NCBI RefSeq assembly: GCF_052425735.1
Contig: NC_135761.1
Coordinates: 17,174,001-17,238,000 of the forward strand
DNA: 64,000 nucleotides
Reading direction: 5' to 3'
DNA from: Oculina patagonica
Taxonomy: Eukaryota
A program made the translations under genes and the position numbers. Positions 25,496 through 58,813 of this stretch are shown in pieces (the first letter of the stretch is position 1; each line of letters opens with the position of its first letter). The notes beneath the pieces are model-generated. The model was not told the origin of the DNA. It searched no databases and was given only the letters and a program-made list of their open reading frames with translations.

Positions 25496-28400
25496 ATGGT
25501 TTACAAAGCTGCAGTAGTCTTCGTACTTTCTTTCGCTGTTTTAGGACATTTGCCGCAAACACTGTGTTGGAAACGGGCAGAAAACGGCCGATTCTTTGAT
25601 GGAGCAGTTTTCCAACGCCGCAGCTTTGCGCTTGAAACGGATATTTTAAAGAAAACAAAAACGTTCGGGGAACTTCAATGCGGCTTTGCCTGTTTGTCTG
25701 AGAACTATTGCATTGCACAAACTTACTGCATTGAGTCTTGGGACAAAAATAAGGGCACTTGCTATCTTCATAAAAATGGAATCAAAGACGAACAAACTGC
25801 TGCAGCTGTTCTTGTGAGAAGGGACAGATGTATCTTTCAACAGTACATCAATTTTTACGTAAGTTGGCTAAAAAATTATTTGTGAGCATTGTAACTTGAT
25901 AAGGAAATCGTTAACATTATAACTTTGAATTATTTTATCTTTTGCTAGACAAACTGCCAAGATATAGTATAACAACTAACAAATGAAACCGATTTATTTT
26001 GCGATTAATATCGTTGGAATAGAATGTTCGGTGGATTCAATTTACCCATAATATTGTTGCCAAAGGATTTGATTCTCATGTTTTGACGAAAAATCCATAA
26101 TTTAAGGGAGCAAGATTTTTTTTTGTTGTAAAATCAAATCTGCATCTGTCAAATGTACAAGTTGTGCAACATTACATGCACATTTTAATTTTTCAAAGTT
26201 AAATGCGGTTTCTTTGTTTGCACATGTCACAATAACCGCAGAATTCGAGAAAGAATAATGATATTAAAGTAAAGAAAAATCTAACTTAACGCAGTTTTGA
26301 TGACAGTAGTGCAACTAAAAAATTTGGGAAATTGTGAATTTAAAAGCGAAAAACATATAGCTGTTTTAAAACCACGAACGCTTGACGCTTACGAAATTAT
26401 AATGAATCTTATTTTAGTAAACTGGCTGGATCTTAAACAAACAGTACGCCATCAATTCAAACGCCTCATGAAAGTACGTGTTAAGCATTCAAATCAAATC
26501 ACCCCATGTAACATAAGTGCATTTGAAACCAATGCATTCTTCGTAAAGAAAATTATTATTCTAAGGTTATAAATTCGGGGTTTACAATCGTCTCCATCTT
26601 TCCTGATGCAACCGCCACTTGTTTAAGGGTCATTCGCTCCTGTGAGGACCGGATGTAAAAAGACCCTCAAAACGAACCTAAGCCTTTCTATAATGCTGAA
26701 TTTCAGGGAAAGAAAAATACAGAGCGTATGAACATTTTCATAAAAAGTTCAACATCATAAAAAACTGCTAATAATTCATAATTTATTACAGAATTGGTCC
26801 CACTCCGATGGTTGTAATAAATATATAGTCCGAGCCTGCAAAAGGTCTGTTATTATGCATGCATTGTTTTCTTTCTTTTTTCTCGCACAATAAATGGGCA
26901 CACGCAAATTTGGTAAAAAACTAATAATGGATACGTTTTACCCTTACAAAAAAATGTGCCACCCCGCATTTCCTTATTTGGTAATCCCATCTAGTCTTTT
27001 CGAGTTGCAACAAAAAAAACTCCGACCTGTCAATAAAGCAATGTGATTTCTTACAGGAGGCCGCCTGTTCAAGACAATGCAAAAATGGAAACAAGTGTGA
27101 CTATGACTATGATAACAGACAATACGCCTGCCGCTGTTATCCGCCTTACTATGGAATGTACTGCGAGAAGATCCAAGGTGATACTTCATGTATGCACAGC
27201 ACAAAATGTCCGTTTTCACACTAGAAGACGGACAAATTGTGAATTTAAGACGGCTTTTAGACGACTTGTTCGTCTAGACGACCAAGTCTTCCTCAAAAGC
27301 TCGTCTTTCTAGACGGCCAACTCGACGGACAAATTCAGACGACTTGTAAGTTCAAAATCGTGTCCGTTCCGTAGGACACAAATCGCTTTCCATAAATTCA
27401 ACCGACACGACTGAGCCACCAGGTTGATAAAAGGAGTATTATTGCCTGTAATTGTCTTGTAGCCATGTAATACCTCTGGAGTAAGTGATAAATTTATAAC
27501 TCTGTAAAAGTTCTGGAAAACTTACACATTTTCTTTCTTCGTTAGCGAATTGAAACCTAAGTGCATGATGCAAAATGTAGGAGATAAACAGTATAAATGT
27601 ACAATTTTCACAAAGCTCTGGGCAAAATATTTTACCAATGTTATGATTGTATATATTGTTGTTGTATGTTCTTTAGATCGAAAAATGCTCTCAATGTTCT
27701 CCAAGGTACCCCACTCCTTTGCCAAACGTAACTTTGTACAATTTTTTGGACAAAAATTGTTAAGGTGGGATGTGACACGATTAAAAGGTAGCAACTCATT
27801 TGAAAGTGAACAATCAGCAATATAACCGAAAACTGAAATTGACGGACTATCAAAAAGGTTGCTTAAATTTACTTATTTACTTTTTTCTTCTTTTAGCATT
27901 ATCGTTCCGTTTCACCACTCTTGGCATGCAGGGCAATTCTGGACCGGTATCAACCGCTGGTTACGCCAACACCTCTCTTGATGAAACAGTCACACTAGAC
28001 CAAGGGATACAAATCTGGACAGTGCCATTCACAGCTTTATATAAACTAACTATAGCAGGGGCTTCGGGCGGGGACGCACTTACCTTTGGGGGGCACGGTG
28101 CAATTATTGGTGGGGAGGTACGACTTACCGAGGGAATTAAACTCCACCTTCTAATTGGTCAGAAAGGCCTTAAAGGAAGTTCCGGAGCGGGAGCGGGAGG
28201 GGGTGGGGGCACGTTTGTAGCTTTAAGTGATAATACGCTTCTGGCAGTAGCTGGTGGCGGGGGTGGTGGAGGCGGTCACATTACGGCAGAAAATGGGGCA
28301 AACGGGTCAACAAGCAGAAATGGAAGCGTGTATGGTGGCGTGAATGGTCTGGGTGGGTCAGTTTGCGCCAATGAGATAAACGACGCAGGGGGAGGGGGTG

Positions 28401-28723
28401 GTTTTCAAGGAAATGGAAAATGCAGTTACTCAATTACGTGTATCGCTCCTCGCATATGTGACCAGGCCGGGAGGTCTTTTTTAAATGGTGGTATGGGAGG
28501 CACGGGAAATGGAGTTGGTGGATTTGGTGGGGGTGGGGCGGCATACAGCTACTTTCCGGGGGGTGGAGGTGGATACTCTGGAGGTGGTGTGTATGCTTCG
28601 TCATTTGGTGCGAAGGGAGGCGGGGGCGGATCCTATTACACGGGTGAATTGAAACCAAGTAATGAAGTGAATGCTGCTGACGGATACGTGCTGATAGATT
28701 TCGATGGTAGCTCAGTAAAATAA
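25496..28723 (+). CDS. A1': secreted PAN-EGF-ALK/LTK glycine-rich-domain protein, ~436 aa
   Basis: Exon 25496-25858: signal peptide MVYKAAVVFVLSFAVLG and PAN C-x3-C-x5-C...C, phase 0. Exon 27057-27177: EAACSRQCKNGNKC...CRC...YYGMYCEK, a 6-Cys EGF, phase 1. Exon 27897-28723: GRD. All junctions are GT-AG. Confidence 0.9.
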
Positions 28724-56040: not shown

Positions 56041-58813
56041 ATGAACGACCTTAGTCTCATTTTGCTCCTTTTCGCTATGCTTCGAACCACTAACAGCCTA
56101 GAACAGCGTCATATTCTCGGCGCGCTCAAGACAGTTTCAAACCATAAACTAAATGGTCACCAAATTAAGGTTCTGAAAGGTTCTACGTTGTTATCATGTG
56201 CTCAGTCGTGCCTAGCGGAGCCCAAGTGCGTGTCCACGAACTTTGGAGTCCCGCCTGCGGAGGTTAAGCCTGTATGCGAGCTAAACGATCGTAGTGTTTC
56301 GTTGCTATCCAACGATGAATTAGAATACGCTGAAGGATTTGTATTTTCTCTCTATTCGGAGACGTTTCAAACTGCGGGCAGTGACATGAAGGTAGGGGTG
56401 ATTTACTTTAGGCTTCATTTTAATTAACGAAAACAAACGAGTGAGTTTCAGATCCACTCATGGTTTTTGCTTTGGATTTTAGGATGCTTACTGATGTTTT
56501 ATTGATAAAGATAATTTCTTGATCGATAACGTACCAAATCTTTTTCACTTAAGTAGCATGAGTTTAACCTTTCTCTTTCACGTAAATGTACGTTTAACAC
56601 TATCATTAAATGAACTGTTTAGACTTCACTGCATTACACTTAAACAAGAGAAAATTCGGGATTTTCTCTTGATGTTAACGCAAACTCAAAGTGCACTAAC
56701 TTATTAAATTGAACTAAAACATACCATTTACAATTGTTACTCGTGTTAAAAGTTAACACCAGTGAAGTACTATGCTTTTTTCTTTATTTTTTTTCTCTGT
56801 GCTTACTTTGAGACATTGAAGGATATTGTTTTTGTGTCAGGATGGCTGTAAACAGATAACTTGTCTCAACCAAGGCCACTGCTATTTCGACGGAGAAAAA
56901 GAACAATTTCGGTGTAAATGCATTCTTCCATGGACAGGAAACAGTTGCGAGACAAAGATAGGTAAAGCTTGCTTTTGAATGCTATAACTACTACGTATAC
57001 TTGCATTTGTACCACGAAATACAAGCGAGCTAGCCTGAGCGATCTTTGGCAACCCAGTAGCGGGTAAAAGGCGAAGTAAACCAGGCAAACTAGGATGCAA
57101 GGAATGGCGCAGTGATGAGAGCACTCGCCTTCCACAAATGTATCCCATGTATCTCAGTTAAATTTGTTGTTAGACCTCAGTCCTTGCTCTGAGGGCCTTT
57201 CTAATGTGAATCATGGGCCACAAGTTTGCAGTCGTTAGACTGTGGTATGTGCTACCCTTGTTAAAGGGTCTTAAAGAAATTTGACTTAACCATCGGCGCA
57301 GAGGAAGTTAACAAAACCCGAAAATGAGATTGTGCTAGAACTGTTGCTGTGCTAACGTCATGGAAAAATGGAAAATTTTTGACTCGAGGTAGCGAAACGA
57401 AACGAGCTGGTAACGAGTCCCTAGAATGGCTGTGAGAACAAAAACTCAAGATTTAGTTTCCCACCTGGTCCGATCAACACACCAGTAAAGCCAAGTTTAC
57501 GCAAGCAATTTTTATATGACAATTTTTGTGAAAATTTTTATTTGCTTGTGTAGATGCCAAAGTTTATGAGACAAATGTATTTGATGACAAGCTGGTGTGA
57601 GCTTTCATGTGACTAATCAAAGTTGCCACACAGGGACATTGCTCGTGTAGACGACTCGTCACATAAAATCTGTTAAATATTGCGTCAGCATATGTGTTCC
57701 CCAATCTCCTAAACTCCCACTGATCACTGTGCGCTCGTATCTCTTTGCGTATCTTTGCCGTCAAACGTCATTACTGGCGCACTTAGCTTTGGATTGCTGA
57801 CAAATGACTGTTGTGCAATCTACACGATCAAATATATTTGTCACAAAAATTGTCAGACATATAAATTGCCTGTGTGAACCAGGCCTAACTGTTATGCGTA
57901 AACAAAGCAATTACATAGTTGTCTTATTTCGTTCAACTCATTCAAGAAATAGTTTAAACCCTGAGTTCTTATGGTTTCTTTTTCCATAGATGTTTATTAT
58001 TACTTTACCACACTTGGTGCGACGGGAAGGTTCGGACCAAAGAACAACGCCCAGTACCAAGGTACGTCTTTGGAAGGAATCTCAGTACAAGACGGCATGC
58101 AAACATGGAATGTTCCCGTAACGGCTCAATATCACCTTGATCTGTGTGGAGCTTCAGGAGCGGACAACAACAACCTTTACACAAAAGGTGGCAGAGGAGC
58201 TAAGGTACAAGGAAGTGTCCATCTCCAGCAAGGAACACAGTTGACAGTTTTAGTAGGACAATTAGGAAAAGGAGGAGGAGGTGGTGGTGGCACGTTTGTT
58301 GTATTTGCTGATGGTGGCAGCCCGTTGGCTGTGGCTGGCGGTGGCGGTGCAGGTGATTTTGTTGATGGTGATCCTGGACAAGCCGGCAATAGTGGTAGCG
58401 TTAATACTGGCCAGCCAGGAAACGGAGGGATGGTGTGTGTGTCTAGAGGCAAGGTAACTGATTTACTCGGTGTGGGAGGTGGAGGAGGTCTCGTCACAGA
58501 TGGTCGATGCTATGTGAATTCCAATTGCAACAAGCCATGCACTGACAATGACGGAGGTAAATCGTTTAACTCAGGGGGAGAAGGAGGGTTCAACAAAAAC
58601 TCTCGATGTGCGGGTGGATTCGGTGGCGGTGGAAACTGTGGGGGAGGAGGTGGATACTCTGGTGGTGGTGCACAAGTCGATGGAAAAAGTAAGAATCTGG
58701 ATCTTCACGCCGGAGGAGGAGGGTCGTTTGTCCCTGGAGCTGATTGGACTGTTGTGTCTGGAGGTTGTTCCCCTGGAGACGGGTTTGCCACGTTTCAAAT
58801 AGTAGTGGACTAA
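56041..58813 (+). CDS. B2: tandem paralog of B1, PAN-EGF-GRD, ~431 aa
   Basis: Exons 56041-56391, 56841-56961 (DGCKQITCLNQGHCYFDGEKEQFRCKC...) and 57990-58813. Same phases as B1. The upstream region is also homologous to B1's. Confidence 0.92.

Follow-up and report, generated by a model that had tools for sequence, protein, structure and literature searches.

A cluster of related genes was mapped by tblastn in a 64-kb stretch of the coral Oculina patagonica (the window; contig NC_135761.1, positions 17,174,001 to 17,238,000 of assembly GCF_052425735.1), each complete gene encoding a signal peptide, a PAN/apple domain, an EGF-like domain, and a glycine-rich domain (GRD). The five GRDs compared (A1, A1′, A2, B1, and B2, of two paralog types, A and B) are ALK/LTK-type TG modules encoded by single exons—that is, a TNF-like β-sandwich combined with a polyglycine-II bundle. 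The initial annotation had proposed that the variable segments between the conserved glycine runs form a surface resembling complementarity-determining regions (CDRs), as in the phage adhesin gp38. A constrained scaffold with relaxed loops, rather than a diversified CDR-like surface, is probably the correct reading: the glycine runs do not change, the ratio of nonsynonymous to synonymous rates (dN/dS, ω) in the loops is at or below 1, and a nominal signal of positive selection in clade A disappears when rates are allowed to vary among sites.

Glycine runs, loops, and codon models

The peptides originally quoted from A2, A1′, and A1 and from B1 and B2 are all present in the sequence, and the two 2-residue indels reported between B1 and B2 are correct. 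The variable segments in question (hereafter the named loops) read DSFTKGGH, AAELN, FNITCTSPRS, YNYF, and NASSFR in A1; DALTFGGH, ANEIN, YSITCIAPRI, YSYF, and YASSFG in A1′; and DSLTSGGY, ATEIN, FKITCTFPRS, YKSF, and HASSYG in A2. The near-fixation of the poly-Gly motifs was borne out, as was the variability of the linkers: among runs of at least three glycines, 0 of 33 columns vary in A vs. 55 of the 241 other columns (Fisher p = 7 × 10−4), and 0 of 32 vary in B vs. 48 of 245 (p = 0.002). Between window paralogs, the codons of these runs show a dN of 0 in spite of a dS of 0.14–0.29, so that recent duplication alone does not account for the conservation, which reflects selection.

Within the window, variability of the linkers does not significantly exceed that of the N-terminal TNF-like part (27% vs. 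18% of columns in A, p = 0.14; 16% vs. 24% in B), with the variable columns being spread over the non-glycine parts. When 104 family members are compared, variability and indels peak in the named segments (mean entropy 2.97 vs. 1.89 bits, p = 1.6 × 10−8), and insertion hot spots coincide with them. The N-glycosylation sequons NIT and NAS occur, as first described, only in A1 at the two loops concerned. One private NGS sequon is found elsewhere in A2 and one in A1′, two sequons are conserved across corals, and the remainder appear and disappear in numerous lineages, in some cases at these loops; the turnover of sequons is genuine but general.

The question put to the selection tests was the following: loop variation DIVERSIFYING? 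Codon alignments were built from 14 A-type and 7 B-type GRD exons (window copies and their orthologs in other corals, loci L001–L014) and analyzed with codon-likelihood code that reproduces IQ-TREE likelihoods exactly, and pairwise dN/dS between window paralogs was calculated by the Nei–Gojobori method. Pairwise ω was 0.27–0.29 for the whole GRD exon, at a dS of 0.22–0.32; the values were 0.35–0.45 (A) and 0.19 (B) for all linkers, 0.26–0.60 for the named loops, and 0.06–0.17 for the PAN exons. Single-ratio model M0 gave 0.38 for clade A and 0.31 for clade B. In the multi-species fits the glycine runs had an ω of 0.00–0.05, and the TNF-like part together with many connector residues had an ω of 0.25–0.33 from corals to sea anemones.

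For the named loops of clade A, maximum likelihood yielded an ω of 0.61–0.69 (p = 0.005–0.02 against 1). The segments had been chosen on the window copies, so that masking the window sequences provides an independent test, and ω was then 0.61 (p = 0.011 against 1); in clade B it was 0.27, significantly below 1. For the two loops that vary most (DSFTKGGH and FNITCTSPRS in A1), the choice of codon frequencies moved ω between 0.7 and 1.6, which is not distinguishable from 1. Under partition-specific codon frequencies the estimate for the glycine-run class was meaningless and was discarded, while for the other classes both sets of codon frequencies gave concordant results. A dN/dS above 1 that was robust to model choice was not found in the variable segments (loop-class ω 0.27–0.69).

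Alleles are similarly uniform at the protein level. In the A GRDs, haplotype pairs from three other corals, both members of a pair coming from the same sample, show 0 nonsynonymous and 4 synonymous differences, and two haplotype pairs of B GRDs show 3 nonsynonymous and 5 synonymous ones, the flanking divergence between coral haplotypes being 0.2–0.8%. In short contigs of four DNA runs, the variants listed for the A1 GRD exon comprise 8 synonymous and 5 nonsynonymous changes; several of the latter match paralog states, and the intron has a similar density of variants. High allelic protein diversity was not found in these small samples of coral haplotype pairs and four DNA runs. The Alr proteins of Hydractinia, the FREPs of snails, Sp185/333 of sea urchins, and the VCBPs of amphioxus are marked by extreme allelic or somatic diversity, with ω above 1 in their binding regions. 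The coral genes resemble these families in encoding secreted or surface proteins in lineage-specific tandem expansions, the multigene expansion having been found in both Oculina and Acropora, but differ from them in having GRD haplotypes that are nearly identical in protein and an ω at or below 1.

Several observations weigh against a scaffold whose loops are simply relaxed, and argue instead that selection diversifies a small number of tip residues between the glycine runs, in which case the secreted TG modules would be variable recognition heads for microbes, symbionts, or non-self. When rate variation is left out, the likelihood-ratio test (LRT) of M1a vs. M2a in clade A gives a statistic of 48.5, with 4.4% of sites at an ω of 4.4, and that of M7 vs. 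M8 gives 55, with 5.2% of sites at an ω of 3.7. Eight sites reach a posterior of at least 0.94; all of them lie in inter-glycine connectors, and five lie in named loops. In independent lineages, nonsynonymous changes accumulate about 2.8 times as fast in the named loops as at the other non-glycine sites, and these loops are also where indels and sequon turnover are seen. Tandem expansion of the family, a frequent feature of recognition families, has taken place in Oculina and Acropora, and the module is homologous to virion and tail proteins of phages (PMC9608196). Moreover, the synonymous rate is poorly estimated at very variable codons, so that the rate-variation model described below is conservative and may absorb real positive selection, and the samples are small, with 14 A-clade and 7 B-clade sequences and with alleles represented by two haplotypes per species or by short contigs.

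Diversifying selection on tip residues is nevertheless considered unlikely, given how the signal behaves once site rates may differ. The synonymous rate is 1.6–2.8 times the gene average in the variable loops and 0.35–0.39 times the average in the glycine runs, a rate heterogeneity of the kind that fools M2a and M8; candidate causes of these synonymous-rate differences are codon constraint against slippage in GGN runs, gene conversion, and alignment error in the loops. Gamma-distributed site rates acting on both types of substitution raised the log-likelihood of M1a by 84 units to −5791.5, which is better by 59 units than that of M2a without rate variation (−5850.9). Adding a class with ω above 1 to this model gave an LRT of 0, and forcing 4% of sites to an ω of 4 cost 4.7 log-likelihood units. 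In the best model, about 71% of codons have an ω of 0.12 and about 29% have an ω of 1. A per-site test in which each site has its own synonymous rate identified 126 negatively selected sites and 0 positively selected sites at p < 0.05, with five at p < 0.1, fewer than expected by chance. Most of the eight high-posterior sites also have high synonymous rate estimates, and several border indels, where alignment error mimics fast evolution. No signal of positive selection was detected in clade B (LRT 1.8). The near-identity of alleles in protein speaks against selected tips as well.

The M7/M8 comparison proposed in the initial annotation is nominally positive and collapses to an LRT of 0 with among-site rate variation. 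As far as could be tested, dN/dS is below 1 and the variation does not exceed that of relaxed loops, and the CDR-like surface fails as an explanation. Part of the original interpretation stands, namely the fixed glycine scaffold with fast-evolving, indel-prone connectors.

ALK/LTK-type fold and phage relatives

Membership of the coral GRDs in the TG family PF12810 was established by profile score for the A copies and by structural superposition. The Pfam scores are 39.9 bits for A1 and 45.2 bits for A2 (gathering cutoff 24.5), with B1 just below the cutoff at 24.2 bits; B1 is about 43% identical to the A GRDs over about 200 residues. A sequence search of the Protein Data Bank (PDB) matched Caenorhabditis elegans SCD-2, human ALK, and human LTK. 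The AlphaFold2 model of the full A1′ protein, made from a 104-sequence alignment, has a mean predicted local distance difference test (pLDDT) score of 87, exceeding 90 over the GRD, in which strands flank long coil regions predicted with confidence. The top PDB matches of this model in Foldseek are human ALK and LTK (E = 2 × 10−16, target-normalized TM-score 0.72, 28% identity); E values against entries 7NX3, 7NX1, and 7LRZ range from 2 × 10−16 to 4 × 10−15, with TM-scores to the target of 0.64–0.73, and the PAN part of the model falls on apple domains.

The coral modules share with the TG supradomain of ALK, LTK, and SCD-2 (PDB 7NX3, 7NX1, 7LRZ, and 7LIR) the fold, the motifs at the start of the domain, and the glycine runs that form a polyglycine-II core. 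Orthology to the ALK/LTK receptors themselves was not found, as the stop codon lies 30–32 residues past the last glycine run and neither a transmembrane helix nor a tyrosine kinase follows. In contrast to ALK and LTK, the coral proteins lack a transmembrane segment, kinase, MAM, and LDLa, are predicted to be secreted, and have PAN as the N-terminal partner. Furthermore, the EGF-like domain precedes the GRD, whereas it follows it in ALK and LTK, the GRD is encoded by one intron-less exon, and the genes lie in tandem and inverted arrays. The TG modules of ALK and LTK bind cytokines.

Within the longest connector of the A-type GRDs (alignment columns 158–195), two cysteine patterns were observed among coral lineages. 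The first consists of SVC, later KCS, ITC, and one more cysteine, and the second of CC followed by two single cysteines, without the SVC cysteine. These patterns suggest two alternative disulfide arrangements of A-type GRDs among coral lineages.

With respect to phages, the fold family has relatives in PHROG 22713, which A1 matches over residues 35–268 (E = 1.7 × 10−27, 97.8 bits) and B1 matches with E = 2 × 10−19, and in 134 models of a viral predicted-structure library at E ≤ 0.001 (best 2.9 × 10−22), which include virion structural, tail fiber, baseplate, and minor tail proteins. The phage comparison concerns 47534-48349 and 53557-54381 of the window and the loci L015:4908-5804 and L016:4518-10249. 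A PHROGs scan at E ≤ 0.1 returned only three families, all of unknown function and none annotated as a tail fiber adhesin. In a tblastn search of 50,697 phage genomes, only TG proteins of cyanophages (Synechococcus phages) and actinophages were matched; the actinophage match is a 2853-residue protein labeled ALK receptor, and the phage genes adjoin collagen-like and lyase genes. The coral GRD aligns from end to end with gp65 of Synechococcus phage S-CREM1, with common non-glycine motifs, in phmmer and uncorrected BLASTP, but composition-corrected pairwise BLASTP of the same two sequences gave no alignment. The case for coral–phage homology therefore rests on profiles and structures, not on BLASTP. 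Solved phage chains (Bxb1 tail tip and Pam3 fiber) match weakly in Foldseek (E = 1 × 10−2 to 3 × 10−3, TM-score 0.16–0.34). Two metagenome matches, P0048 and P0081, were rejected as bacterial or phage relatives because they start with intron-like translated sequence, as coral exons do.

The PHROG 22713 score of A1 is well above its score against the Pfam ALK/LTK model. As to whether the microbial modules or bilaterian ALK form the closer branch of the cnidarian module, glycine composition bias may inflate the phage score. It has to be regarded as improbable that cnidarians recruited a phage- or bacterial-type TNF-like and polyglycine module and fused it to PAN and EGF as secreted recognition proteins, with columns 63, 66, 135, 158, 181, 185, 200, and 226 of the A clade under episodic diversifying selection and with a different target for each tandem paralog.

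The T-even gp38 adhesins possess a polyglycine sandwich in which hypervariable inter-glycine segments set receptor specificity. The coral GRDs resemble S16 gp38 in their conserved glycine-rich motifs, polyglycine-II helices, and variable connecting loops. The gp38 loops are known to set host range. No sequence or profile match between T-even gp38 and the coral GRD was found in PHROGs or in the phage-genome tblastn search, and S16 gp38 (PDB 6F45) is absent from the 50 best PDB structure matches in Foldseek. In addition, gp38 has a β-helix middle domain, not a TNF-like sandwich (PMC9608196). In the cyanophage fiber Pam3 gp24, a TNF-like and glycine-rich module has been described whose glycine stem is conserved and whose distal tip varies; it is similar to both C. 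elegans ALK and S16 gp38, and TG-type modules of phage fibers bind host receptors (PMC9608196). A survey of polyproline-II bundle domains has also set the ALK and gp38 bundles side by side (bioRxiv 10.1101/2023.11.25.568672).

Phage TG proteins (Pam3 gp24, PHROG 22713/7388/1589, S-CREM1 gp65, and the giant TNF-like and glycine-rich protein of the Actinomycetia phage DSL-LC01) are matched by the coral GRD over the whole module in profile and structure. They differ in being trimeric virion parts on helical or collagen-like shafts, whereas the N-terminal partners in the corals are PAN and EGF, and the coral loops lack robust diversifying selection. The phage analogy drawn in the initial annotation is sound at the level of the fold family and more than superficial, but it was already in the literature, and the relative in question is not gp38.

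The fold, the logic of its glycines, and its phage counterparts were already known, while the kinase-less cnidarian PAN–EGF–GRD family exists only under automatic, often misleading database names. Relatives are automatically named loricrin-like or keratin-like, which are compositional mislabels. Literature searches with the Pfam accession, the domain names, and the automatic protein names yielded no paper on this family or its function.

Proposed mechanism and remaining explanations

Under the favored reading of a constrained scaffold with relaxed loops, glycine-rich strands would run out from the TNF-like β-sandwich and pack as a bundle, with the GRD at the C-terminus of a protein that is probably secreted, given its N-terminal hydrophobic leader and the lack of a membrane anchor. 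The glycine runs would be fixed because only glycine fits into the tightly packed core of the polyglycine-II bundle, and the inter-glycine stretches would be connectors at the surface in which substitutions, indels, and sequon turnover are tolerated. Types A and B are probably ancient paralogs that lie head to head and were multiplied in Oculina by tandem and inverted duplication. Since every characterized TG module (in ALK, LTK, and phage fibers) is a binding module, the most likely role, by analogy with these proteins, is binding of an extracellular partner, one that does not change fast.

A purely structural role appears quite improbable. The protein would then be a component of extracellular material such as mucus, matrix, the cnidocyst wall, or the skeletal organic matrix, with the glycine bundle as a rigid brick, loops that have no binding role, and loop variation that is functionally irrelevant. 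The glycine-rich composition and rigid polyglycine-II core would suit such a role, as would the frequency of PAN and EGF domains in matrix proteins, the 29% of sites that are neutral, and the loricrin-like and keratin-like database names. However, the TNF-like part and many connector residues are conserved from corals to sea anemones (ω 0.25–0.33) beyond what a filler needs, the characterized TG modules all bind, and the literature searched contained no proteomic report of the family in coral skeleton or cnidocysts.

That the differences between copies are assembly artefacts (collapsed or duplicated haplotypes) and not real paralogs is barely credible, in spite of three gaps, a perfectly identical direct repeat at the truncated copy B3, and two inverted copies converging on a gap, as the GRD exons differ by a dS of 0.22–0.32, far above the 0.2–0.8% between coral haplotypes, the A1 gene is present in independent DNA runs, and A1′ is identical to a deposited O. 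patagonica protein.

This fold is familiar from phage tail fibers and from the receptor encoded by a human oncogene. If the loops did encode variable recognition, they would constitute a new type of invertebrate recognition scaffold, shared with the receptor-binding tips of phages; on present evidence they do not, at least not detectably. This outcome spares costly follow-up resting on a nominally significant PAML result, and illustrates how a false M7/M8 signal arises in a glycine-rich gene whose sites differ strongly in rate. The conserved head-to-head A/B pair and the expansions in Oculina and Acropora still merit functional attention.

Gene cluster and assembly

A complete gene of the cluster has three coding exons, namely one for the signal peptide and PAN/apple domain, one for a single EGF-like domain, and a single GRD exon of about 820 bp that runs through the stop codon; acceptor sites and reading frames of the GRD exons were read directly from the window sequence. 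Four genes are complete (A1′, B1, and B2 on the forward strand and A1 on the reverse strand) and four copies are partial (A2, A3, A4, and B3), with the GRDs of types A and B being about 43% identical. The A1′ exons match a deposited O. patagonica protein, P0002, with full identity; its 436 residues comprise signal peptide, PAN, EGF, and GRD. RNA support for the A1 gene takes the form of shared words, with up to 54% of the sampled words of its GRD exon occurring in RNA-type runs. The coordinates are collected in Table 1.

Table 1. Exons of the PAN–EGF–GRD genes and assembly gaps in the window (positions are those of the window)
Feature	Position	Strand	Remarks
A1′ exon 1, signal peptide and PAN/apple	25496..25858	+	100% identity to P0002 residues 1-121; paralogous exon matches Pfam PAN_1/PAN_4
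A1′ exon 2, EGF-like	27057..27176	+	tblastn with the 40-residue EGF peptide of A genes
A1′ GRD exon	27897..28723 (codons 27899-28720)	+	AG acceptor to stop; 274 codons; modeled fold
A1 GRD exon	47531..48351 (codons 47534-48349)	−	Pfam PF12810 E 6.3e-10; PHROG 22713 E 1.7e-27
A1 EGF exon	48965..49084	−	tblastn
A1 signal peptide and PAN exon	50260..50622	−	tblastn; dN/dS 0.06-0.17 vs. other A copies
B1 signal peptide and PAN exon	52404..52784 (3′ end approximate)	+	head-to-head with A1; Pfam PAN_1 E 2.9e-5, 24.2 bits, cutoff 21.4
Open reading frame containing the B1 EGF exon	53098..53316 (ends approximate)	+	weak Pfam EGF and DUF7949 matches
B1 GRD exon	53555..54384 (codons 53557-54381)	+	275 codons; PF12810 24.2 bits, just below cutoff; PHROG 22713 E 2e-19
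B2 signal peptide and PAN exon	56041..56424	+	tblastn
B2 EGF exon region	56826..56969	+	tblastn
B2 GRD exon	57990..58813	+	273 codons; 82-84% identity to B1, two 2-residue indels
A2 GRD exon	8025..8845 (codons 8028-8843)	−	GRD exon only; outside the region singled out in the initial annotation
A3, partial	33815..37527	+	PAN 33815-34177; EGF 35546-35665; first 11 nt of GRD exon 37517-37527, truncated by gap
A4, partial	38214..40143	−	PAN 39781-40143; EGF 38214-38333; no GRD exon in assembled letters; tblastn; converges on A3 across gap
B3, partial	23546..24438	−	PAN 24076-24438; EGF 23546-23743; no GRD exon; head-to-head with A1′; 98.8% identity to B1 5′ part
Assembly gap	29936-30067		1.2 kb downstream of A1′ stop codon; no recognized exon adjoining
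Assembly gap	37528-38027		begins 11 nt into A3 GRD exon (acceptor 37517); ends in A4 intron below EGF exon

The window contains at least five A-type and at least three B-type copies per 64 kb, vs. one A/B pair at five other coral loci; single Acropora contigs also carry many copies of the GRD family. In other corals (loci L001, L003, L006, and L011–L014), a single A gene was observed with a divergent B gene before it and the same WD40/F-box-type gene after it. The A/B pair and its neighborhood are conserved among corals, and the multiplication in the window is lineage-specific. The head-to-head arrangement of A and B, which occurs twice in the window and recurs in the other corals beside the same WD40 gene, suggests an old, co-regulated pair, possibly sharing a divergent promoter.

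The head-to-head unit is covered by an inverted segmental duplication (23547-28732 vs. 53300-47522), along which identity falls from 98.8% in the B PAN and EGF exons to 94% in the A PAN and EGF exons and 86% in the A GRD exon; between A1 and A1′, dS is 0.055 in the PAN exon and 0.32 in the GRD exon. This gradient suggests gene conversion of the 5′ halves, stepwise duplication, or a mosaic origin.

All five GRD exons under comparison lie clear of the assembly gaps. The arms flanking the gap between A3 and A4 form a 2.4-kb inverted repeat, 95–98% alike, and since A3 and A4 are different genes on opposite strands, the two sides of this gap are not continuous in any frame. Judging from the exon spacing of the paralogs, the gap takes in the GRD exon of A3, and probably also that of A4; the 500 N written there are probably too few, with one or two GRD exons missing. 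For A2, no match to PAN or EGF exons was found between 8.9 and 23 kb, an interval that contains a gap at 10089-10588.

In the NCBI protein P0001 (LOC144649759), the A2 GRD exon is fused to the A4 exons for PAN and EGF, 30 kb away. This is probably a mis-joined gene model, spanning other genes and a gap, that arose because the GRD exon is missing from the assembly. At 21695-22212 and 23031-23548 lies a direct repeat of 518 bp whose copies are 100% identical and which ends precisely at the point where the GRD exon of B3 is lost; an assembly artefact or a very recent rearrangement could account for it. Finally, a repeat of about 330 bp lies in the EGF–GRD intron of the A genes, at 48621-48953 and also near 27180-27500, 35670-36000, and 38000-38210. 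Its word depth in four DNA runs is about 1,300–20,000, far above the approximately 20–170 of its flanks, marking it as a very high-copy genomic element.

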